This document shows positions 45,021 through 45,754 of a DNA stretch of 64,000 nt, piece by piece. Position 1 is the stretch's first letter. The number at the start of each line of letters is the position of its first letter. The notes beneath the pieces are model-generated. The model made no database searches. It was not told the origin of the DNA and worked only from the letters and a program-made list of their open reading frames with translations. The translations under genes and the position numbers were made by a program. The stretch comes from Rhodosorus marinus CCMP1338 (taxonomy: Eukaryota > Plantae > Rhodophyta). The stretch spans positions 2,542,001 through 2,606,000 of the forward strand of contig JAMWBK010000002.1 in assembly GCA_029953675.1 (NCBI GenBank), written 5' to 3'.

Positions 45021-45754
45021 ATGCAGATTTTTGTGAAGGTAGGCGCTTTGCTTTTGGATTTGTTTTTGGCATGGACGAATGGGGCTTTGTGCGTCATGGA
45101 CGAACGGTGCTGATTCCGATTTCACTTCTCTGTTTTTTTTTTGTGTTCCGCGGTCCAGACTTTGACTGGAAAGACGATCACCCTTGAAGTGGAGTCCTCT
45201 GATACAATCGAGAATGTGAAATCGAAAATTCAAGATAAGGAGGGAATTCCTCCAGATCAGCAGCGACTCATTTTTGCCGGCAAGCAGCTCGAGGATGGTC
45301 GCACGCTGTCCGACTACAACATCCAGAAGGAATCTACTCTGCATCTGGTAAGTCCAAAGAGAAGCTCCGTGCGGTTTATGAGCTCCCTTCATTGAAATTC
45401 GCTTATGAACGATCGCAGGTACTTCGTCTGAGAGGTGGTGGAGATCTTGCCAAGGGCGAGAAACTTTTCAAGACAAAATGTTCGCAGTGTCACACATACG
45501 AGAAGGGAGGTATGACAAAACAGGGCCCCAACCTCCACGGTCTCTTTGGTCGCCAATCCGGTAGTGTTGAGGGATTCTCCTACACTGCAGCGAACAAGAA
45601 CTCCGGAATCTTGTGGGGAGACGATACTCTCTTTGAATATTTGAAAAACCCGAAGAAGATGATTCCTGGAACCAAGATGGTGTTTGCCGGGCTCAAGAAG
45701 GAGACCGAGAGAAGGGACCTGATTGCCTTTTTGAAGAAGGTAACTAGCGACTAA
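45021..45754 (+). CDS. UBQ-CYC: Ubiquitin-cytochrome c fusion protein (76-aa ubiquitin + 104-aa class I mitochondrial-type cytochrome c)
   Basis: Exons: 45021-45038 (MQIFVK), 45159-45347 (TLTGKT...ESTLHL), 45419-45754 (VLRLRGG|[24 protein letters not shown]...[13 protein letters not shown]...[18 protein letters not shown]...*). All introns are phase-0 GT-AG. CxxCH and the axial Met (GTKM) are present. Confidence 0.96.

Follow-up and report, generated by a model that had tools for sequence, protein, structure and literature searches.

The ribosomal proteins eL40 and eS31 are the classic, deeply conserved linear ubiquitin fusion partners, and such partners are few. Natural linear fusions of ubiquitin (Ub) to another protein are generally cut by deubiquitinases (DUBs) after the two glycines (GG) at the end of the ubiquitin part, and a proline after GG blocks this cleavage. 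The present analysis concerns a 64-kb stretch of contig JAMWBK010000002.1 (assembly GCA_029953675.1) of Rhodosorus marinus (Stylonematophyceae), hereafter the window (positions 1–64000), which contains a gene (position 45021–45754) encoding ubiquitin fused in frame to mitochondrial cytochrome c. It is very probably the nuclear gene from which R. marinus makes its mitochondrial cytochrome c, in the form of a ubiquitin C-terminal-extension precursor that is processed by DUBs.

Ub-cytochrome c resembles Ub-eL40 (UBA52/Ubi1,2) and Ub-eS31 (RPS27A/Ubi3) in having one N-terminal canonical ubiquitin with an intact GG that is fused directly to its partner. The partner is small and very basic and contains a Cys motif near its N-terminus, its 1:1 release by DUBs is expected, and a transient aid to folding or expression has been proposed as the role of ubiquitin in such fusions. 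However, the partners in Ub-eL40 and Ub-eS31 are ribosomal zinc-ribbon proteins and these fusions are near-universal, whereas cytochrome c is a soluble heme protein located in the intermembrane space of mitochondria and its fusion is patchy and appears to have been lost repeatedly. A likeness to polyubiquitin precursors was also noted, since in two of the sequences found (P0248 and P0487) cytochrome c takes the position of the C-terminal cap; this cap is one or a few residues without a function of its own in polyubiquitin, but a whole respiratory protein here. In fold and functional residues, the fused protein is like unfused cytochrome c (human CYCS, yeast CYC1, Cyanidioschyzon merolae BAM80328.1 and Chondrus CDF35455.1), but it lacks the initiator Met that these proteins have.

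Among algal fusions, a close one is the Ub-NiSOD found in marine algae (Sibbald et al. 2019, PMC6332867), also a patchily distributed fusion of ubiquitin to a small metalloprotein that was discovered by sequence survey and includes cryptophytes. NiSOD needs an exact His1 N-terminus for nickel binding, so its cleavage is chemically purposeful, whereas no such requirement is known for cytochrome c, and the residue after GG (P1′) varies in its fusions. In addition, Ub-NiSOD was not reported in red algae or glaucophytes (PMC6332867), and Ub-cytochrome c is centred on both. The chlorarachniophyte fusions Ub-actin and Ub-P1 (Archibald, Teh & Keeling 2003), as far as they are presented where cited in PMC6332867, likewise have an abundant housekeeping partner and sometimes more than one ubiquitin repeat; they are limited to one small lineage, unlike Ub-cytochrome c, which occurs in several phyla with a conserved intron structure.

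Gene Structure, Transcripts and Encoded Protein

The gene is located on the forward strand and consists of three exons (45021–45038, 45159–45347 and 45419–45754), which when joined form a 543-nt open reading frame (ORF) of 180 codons and a TAA stop codon (45752–45754). The spliced product is a 76-aa ubiquitin (MQIFVK...LRLRGG) directly linked, with no spacer, to a 104-aa mitochondrial cytochrome c ending in VTSD. GenBank contains this protein without any difference as KAJ8908003.1 (“hypothetical protein NDN08_008104”), whose GenBank locus matches the window from position 43021. A first-pass annotation of this DNA had proposed that ubiquitin is fused in frame to cytochrome c and, by suggesting searches of red algal genomes, had pointed to a red alga; the organism is indeed the red alga Rhodosorus marinus, and the fusion was borne out by the three-exon ORF, Pfam matches, cDNAs and the GenBank model.

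Exon 1 (45021–45038) encodes residues M1–K6 of ubiquitin (ATGCAGATTTTTGTGAAG) and is followed by GTAGGC. Intron 1 (45039–45158, 120 nt, GTAGGC...CCAG) separates K6 from T7, and intron 2 (45348–45418, 71 nt, GTAAGT...GCAG) separates L69 from V70, both in phase 0. Since both introns hold in-frame stop codons in the window strain, their retention would lead to truncated products only. Exon 2 (45159–45347) encodes T7–L69, and its identity to ubiquitin in the tblastn search was 98%. Exon 3 starts with the ubiquitin tail V70–G76 (VLRLRGG, 45419–45439), and the predicted scissile bond follows position 45439. The rest of the exon (45440–45751) encodes cytochrome c residues G1–D104, including the heme-attachment motif C14-S-Q-C17-H18 (TGT TCG CAG TGT CAC, 45479–45493) and the codon of Met80, the sixth heme-iron ligand (45677–45679).

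The GG/GD junction (45439/45440, GG/GDLAKG) is unbroken genomic sequence inside exon 3 and is therefore independent of any splice prediction. No in-frame ATG was found between the stop codon upstream of exon 3 and the CxxCH motif, and the first Met of cytochrome c is residue 25, beyond the heme motif. The cytochrome c part can therefore be translated only through Met1 of ubiquitin, as the first-pass annotation had stated.

Transcript data came from contigs of JGI sample 3300017118 (MMETSP project), which represents a second R. marinus strain. The spliced contigs L011 and L012 carry the complete uninterrupted 180-codon ORF, so that both halves are on one mature mRNA. Their blocks on the window end at 45038, span 45157–45350 and resume at 45418, and exactly the two predicted introns are missing; the nucleotide identity in exon 2 is 96.4%. 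Contig L013 contains both introns and follows the genomic sequence without a break over 44816–46229, representing the unspliced precursor. The same boundaries are marked by the database ORFs P0247, which runs into intron 1, and P0244, which runs into both introns. These second-strain contigs confirm the junctions 45038/45159 and 45347/45419, a check that the first-pass annotation had suggested. Upstream, contigs L011 and L013 match the window up to the ATG with ~75% identity, giving a 5′ untranslated region (UTR) of at least 44816–45020. Downstream, the 3′ UTR covers at least 45755–46229, where the contigs are colinear with the genome, and weaker patches of similarity reach 46615.

Two side observations were made on these transcripts. 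Intron-retaining transcripts are present in the transcriptome, and intron 1 of the other strain is open in frame and leads to a 219-aa ORF, whereas that of the window strain has a stop. In addition, the cDNA contigs extend ~480–860 nt beyond the stop codon (45755–46615), with an opposite-strand 104-aa ORF without a Pfam match at the far end; the extension may be a long 3′ UTR, or else the contigs overlap a convergent transcript there.

Comparison of the two strains revealed nine codons with synonymous changes and no amino-acid changes in the ubiquitin part, and 15 synonymous and two amino-acid changes in the cytochrome c part (24 versus 2 in total). Both halves of the gene are judged to be under purifying selection.

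Both halves of the protein are complete and conserved. Pfam analysis attributed residues 3–74 to PF00240 (ubiquitin, E = 1.9e-32) and residues 80–177 to PF00034 (Cytochrom_C, E = 8e-13), and no family other than ubiquitin and cytochrome was found in the window protein at E ≤ 0.001. The part following ubiquitin thus matches PF00034 and not the zinc ribbon of eL40. The ubiquitin part is identical to yeast ubiquitin at 75 of 76 positions (D24E) and has two differences from human ubiquitin. Residues 1–103 of the cytochrome c part align to residues 1–103 of human cytochrome c (E = 2e-49). Given this residue-for-residue register, the Gly after GG corresponds to the position of the mature vertebrate Gly1, and the earlier suggestion that a cleaved product would begin there agrees with the alignment. 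All 25 key functional and structural residues that were checked are present in the cytochrome c part, including C14, C17, H18 and M80, as well as the core and docking residues F10, P30, R38, Y48, W59, Y67, K72, K73, K79, F82 and R91. The calculated isoelectric point of this part is 9.5.

Some lineage-specific features of the cytochrome c part were also observed. In Stylonematophyceae (window 45440–45751 and P0122), Met replaces the usual Tyr74. The Porphyra/Pyropia proteins (P0193, P0249 and P0250) have one residue fewer in the loop that follows the heme motif (YEAG-ISKQGP), and VFPGLK takes the place of VFAGLK in them.

An AlphaFold model was made for P0121, the 181-aa R. marinus MMETSP0315 orthologue with 96% identity, and 15 fusions were aligned. 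The model contains a confident ubiquitin fold (predicted local distance difference test (pLDDT) about 88–95) and the helices of the cytochrome c fold. Residues 73–77 are disordered (pLDDT < 50), and the predicted scissile bond is located in this disordered segment. The predicted template modelling score of 0.48 indicates two independent domains and is what a flexible tether between them would lead one to expect.

Distribution and History of the Fusion

The full 180-aa query matched polyubiquitins only; hence, homologues were searched for with a query consisting of the short ubiquitin tail and cytochrome c and then with a junction-centred profile, and names were obtained from cluster look-ups. 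A search of the representative library returned mostly bacterial multi-domain cytochromes and eukaryotic models with spurious N-terminal extensions, the sole added fusion being P0373.

The first-pass annotation had proposed a search for the same architecture in red algae, and it was found in many of them and also in glaucophytes and cryptists. The red algae with the fusion are Rhodosorus (two strain types), Purpureofilum apyrenoidigerum, Porphyridium purpureum, Galdieria sulphuraria, G. partita, G. phlegrea, G. yellowstonensis, Porphyra umbilicalis and Pyropia yezoensis. Unfused cytochrome c with its own Met start was found in Cyanidioschyzon merolae, Erythrolobus madagascarensis and the florideophytes Chondrus, Agarophyton and Palmaria. 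The fusion is also present in the glaucophytes Cyanoptyche gloeocystis and Cyanophora paradoxa, and in Cryptista it was found in the cryptophyte Hemiselmis virescens and the plastid-lacking katablepharid Roombia truncata. For Guillardia theta, cytochrome c is not among the ubiquitin fusion partners listed in the survey (PMC6332867). Other fused eukaryotic sequences are P0373, P0428, P0225/P0429, P0440/P0488, P0447/P0489 and P0165, of which P0428 is an uninterrupted ORF on a 29-kb contig with a guanine-cytosine (GC) content of 69%. In JGI data, cytochrome c was also found behind two (P0248, locus L006) or three (P0487) complete ubiquitin repeats, i.e., at the end of a polyubiquitin gene. Judging from these sequences, the fusion is not a one-off and is conserved over at least three eukaryotic phyla.

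Some of the metagenomic Ub-cytochrome c genes have features of their own. This group includes L005, L009, L008 (69% GC), P0373 and P0489. The ubiquitin of L005 and L009 (25% GC) is divergent (EVEGSDSIQNVKQKIQ, EDNRTLADYN) and reminiscent of amoebozoan ubiquitin, and these genes have the K6/T7 intron in common with Rhodosorus. P0489 has an unusual heme motif, CMQCH, immediately after KK.

This distribution bears on whether the fusion could be an artefact of assembly, gene modeling or chimeric transcripts. Automated models of the orthologues are often wrong in detail, as in Pyropia, Cyanophora and Porphyridium, which would fit such an origin. However, the junction is contiguous within one exon, and the fusion is present in the cDNAs of an independent strain. 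The Porphyridium orthologue is one uninterrupted ORF in both the reference genome and an independent read assembly, and the fusion occurs in more than 10 named species, in genomes and transcriptomes alike. With this evidence, there is next to no likelihood that the fusion is artefactual.

At the nucleotide level, the K6/T7 intron is common to Rhodosorus, Galdieria (L004), Pyropia (L007) and the AT-rich L005 and L009, and the L69/V70 intron to Rhodosorus, Galdieria and Pyropia; the genes of Porphyridium (L002) and L008 contain no introns. The split between Galdieria (Cyanidiophytina) and the other red algae (Rhodophytina) is the deepest among living red algae. Since the introns are shared across this split, a fusion gene that contained both introns most likely existed already in the red-algal common ancestor, as the gene structures suggest.

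A neighbour-joining tree was built from 101 aligned cytochrome c columns, which resolve shallow groups only. At shallow levels the tree follows taxonomy, and fused and unfused red algae are interleaved: Galdieria groups with C. merolae, and Porphyridium with Erythrolobus. Fusions from glaucophytes form one group (bootstrap 94) and those from cryptists a weak one (57), while the deep nodes are unresolved and one origin and several origins cannot be told apart on this tree. The interleaving fits repeated loss of the ubiquitin part, which may have proceeded by swapping ubiquitin for a new Met. In unfused proteins this Met sits where fused relatives have GG (M-GDIPEGD in C. merolae versus GG-AIPEGD in Galdieria). 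The cytochrome c of the window is 81% identical to cluster P0124, which includes that of C. merolae. As a side observation, the cytochrome c of P0191 (UniRef A0A1D1YTF0, Anthurium amnicola) groups with that of Rhizophagus irregularis with 100% bootstrap, and this sequence is probably a mycorrhizal-fungus contamination of the plant transcriptome.

We tentatively suggest, as a scenario with somewhat less than an even chance of being correct, that a single origin of the fusion preceded the divergence of red algae, glaucophytes and Cryptista and was followed by losses in green plants and in several red-algal and cryptophyte lines, and that the ubiquitin moiety might additionally act in cytochrome c biogenesis, e.g., by protecting the apoprotein or timing its handling before import. 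The presence of the fusion in Roombia, which has no plastid, speaks against spread with the red plastid. If the single origin is true, the fusion would be a rare genomic change in favour of Archaeplastida and Cryptista having a common ancestor. Together with its two conserved introns, the fusion is a discrete character that could be mapped on the disputed tree of these groups, making it a candidate deep phylogenetic marker.

A tie between the fusion and the system of heme attachment was also considered. Cyanidiophytina keep system I, and Rhodophytina and glaucophytes use holocytochrome c synthase (HCCS, system III) (PMC10879542). Such a tie was rejected, since the fusion occurs with system I in Galdieria and with system III in Rhodophytina and glaucophytes.

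Proposed Processing and Role

In the proposed pathway, ubiquitin would fold while emerging from the ribosome, and cytosolic DUBs would cleave the chain behind Gly76 while translation is under way or shortly afterwards, as for Ub-eL40, Ub-eS31 and polyubiquitin. Each cut would yield a free ubiquitin and an apocytochrome c whose N-terminus lacks Met and is Gly in Rhodosorus. The apoprotein would then enter the intermembrane space by the usual presequence-less route, where HCCS, which Rhodophytina use (PMC10879542), would attach heme to C14 and C17. Ubiquitin may serve as a cleavable co-translational aid to the folding and solubility of its partner, which is small, very basic and unstructured and contains a Cys motif, and would provide one bonus ubiquitin per molecule. 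A folding or solubility aid, as proposed for the ribosomal fusions, seems the most plausible benefit by analogy with them. That cleavage might gate import and that ubiquitin supply might be coupled 1:1 to respiration is speculation.

Cleavage of the precursor by DUBs is supported by several features of the 48 fused sequences collected. The tail LRLRGG is present in 48/48, and P1′ is occupied by G, A, S, T, V or I, with no case of Pro. The disordered region around the scissile bond and the polyubiquitin variants also support cleavage, and the variants with two or three ubiquitins before cytochrome c make sense only as processed precursors. By analogy with other linear fusions, the expected mechanism would be ordinary DUB processing, which is the less striking side of the finding.

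The same features bear on whether ubiquitin stays on, so that the 20-kDa fusion itself would be functional or regulated, either with a permanent ubiquitin-like domain holding a cytosolic pool or with a ubiquitin-fusion-degradation mark. The P0121 model, with two independent folded domains able to coexist, would allow this. However, the exact DUB substrate is retained in every fused sequence, and the ubiquitin is canonical and has not drifted as a ubiquitin-like domain would. Some lineages place two or three ubiquitin repeats before cytochrome c as in an ordinary polyubiquitin precursor, and close relatives make the same cytochrome c from a plain Met start. A folded N-terminal ubiquitin would also be expected to hinder passage through the translocase of the outer membrane (TOM). 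An uncleaved functional fusion is therefore considered improbable to a high degree.

If the precursor is cleaved, the exposed residue itself might be the purpose: a Met-less, unacetylated N-terminus could tune the cytosolic half-life of apocytochrome c via N-degron pathways or serve the heme lyase. The precedent of Ub-NiSOD, where the exact N-terminus matters, argues for this, as does the exposure of a destabilising Ile in Cyanophora and P0373. On the other hand, P1′ is variable, the spacing between GG and the first heme Cys ranges from 13 to 26 residues among the fused sequences, and the fusion occurs with both system I and system III maturation (PMC10879542). Cytochrome c N-termini naturally vary to this extent in length, and no particular N-terminus seems to be required. 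Control of apoprotein half-life by the exposed residue is possible, and N-terminal engineering as the reason for the fusion has only a small probability. N-myristoylation of the exposed Gly was considered and dropped, as P1′ is not conserved as Gly.

It could also be supposed that this gene is a chimeric paralogue, either minor or in decay, and that the respiratory cytochrome c comes from a separate unfused gene. No further ubiquitin or cytochrome c was found by tblastn within the window, and the scan of the alga’s own genome covers these 64 kb only, which leaves room for such a gene. However, strong purifying selection on both halves, the intactness of all functional residues, expression in two MMETSP datasets and a gene structure kept, most likely, since the red-algal ancestor stand against decay. 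In addition, no unfused protein of R. marinus, Porphyridium purpureum or Galdieria was among the matches listed, and their proteomes are in the database. A minor paralogue is thus very improbable, slightly more so than an uncleaved fusion or N-terminal engineering.

Three points weigh against the gene encoding the cytochrome c of R. marinus as a DUB-processed precursor in the form proposed. First, the failure to find unfused cytochrome c of R. marinus, P. purpureum or Galdieria concerns the best 120 matches of each homologue search and is not proof of absence. Second, Ile follows GG in Cyanophora and P0373. Ile is a type-2 destabilising N-terminal residue of the Arg/N-degron pathway, and its exposure in these cases is not explained by a simple “stabilising chaperone” account. 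Third, the repeated loss in Cyanidioschyzon, Erythrolobus and florideophytes shows that the ubiquitin part is dispensable for making cytochrome c. The resulting pairs of fused and unfused sister taxa (Galdieria/Cyanidioschyzon and Porphyridium/Erythrolobus), some of them transformable, are a natural experiment on the ubiquitin-led expression of small basic proteins.

Annotation of the Fusion and Other Features of the Window

No description of a ubiquitin–cytochrome c fusion was found in the open-access full-text literature. Cytochrome is nowhere mentioned in the survey devoted to algal ubiquitin fusions (Sibbald et al. 2019, PMC6332867), which reports no such partner for Guillardia or Bigelowiella and found no additional fusions of ubiquitin in Chlamydomonas, Arabidopsis, yeast or human. 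A 2024 study of cytochrome c maturation in Archaeplastida does not mention the fusion either (PMC10879542). Within this literature, the fusion is apparently undescribed, and with it one of the best-studied proteins joins the deeply conserved natural linear ubiquitin fusion partners. The earlier hint that cytochrome c might be an unreported ubiquitin partner therefore stands as regards published descriptions, but the gene models are already in GenBank and UniProt under wrong or uninformative names. The novelty is in the recognition of the fusion and not in the sequence.

Several database names of the gene are wrong or uninformative and can be corrected. The proteins of Rhodosorus, G. yellowstonensis, G. 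partita, Porphyra and Pyropia are found as “hypothetical protein”, that of G. sulphuraria (EME26571.1, P0420) is called just “ubiquitin”, and two Galdieria species have “Cytochrome c” in UniProt. The Porphyridium protein (KAA8499589.1, L002) was misnamed “Ubiquitin-60S ribosomal protein L40”; its precomputed families are ubiquitin and Cytochrom_C only, with no eL40. The Pyropia model (KAK1863867.1, L007, 292 aa) reads through intron 1, and the Cyanophora model (P0431) has a false N-terminus.

No ORF of 300 aa or more was found within window positions 1–64000, which fits split genes. Opposite the ubiquitin exons, the antisense ORFs 44620–45072 and 44874–45392 have no Pfam match and were treated as spurious. 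A scan for bacterial promoters and terminators gave matches at chance level and is irrelevant to a eukaryotic gene. Elsewhere in the window, exon-sized pieces of other genes were recognised. The forward strand contains pieces encoding a GAPDH C-terminal domain (8039–8698), a 2-oxoacid dehydrogenase acyltransferase (27223–28020) and an Rsm22-like methyltransferase (51093–51911). Pieces of a galactosyltransferase (10903–11493), a queuine tRNA-ribosyltransferase (20223–20849) and a C2H2 zinc-finger protein (48537–49145) are located on the reverse strand. Also on the reverse strand, two overlapping long ORFs lie in a Gly/Ala/Pro-rich low-complexity stretch (32349–33325), which is probably a simple-sequence region and not two genes.

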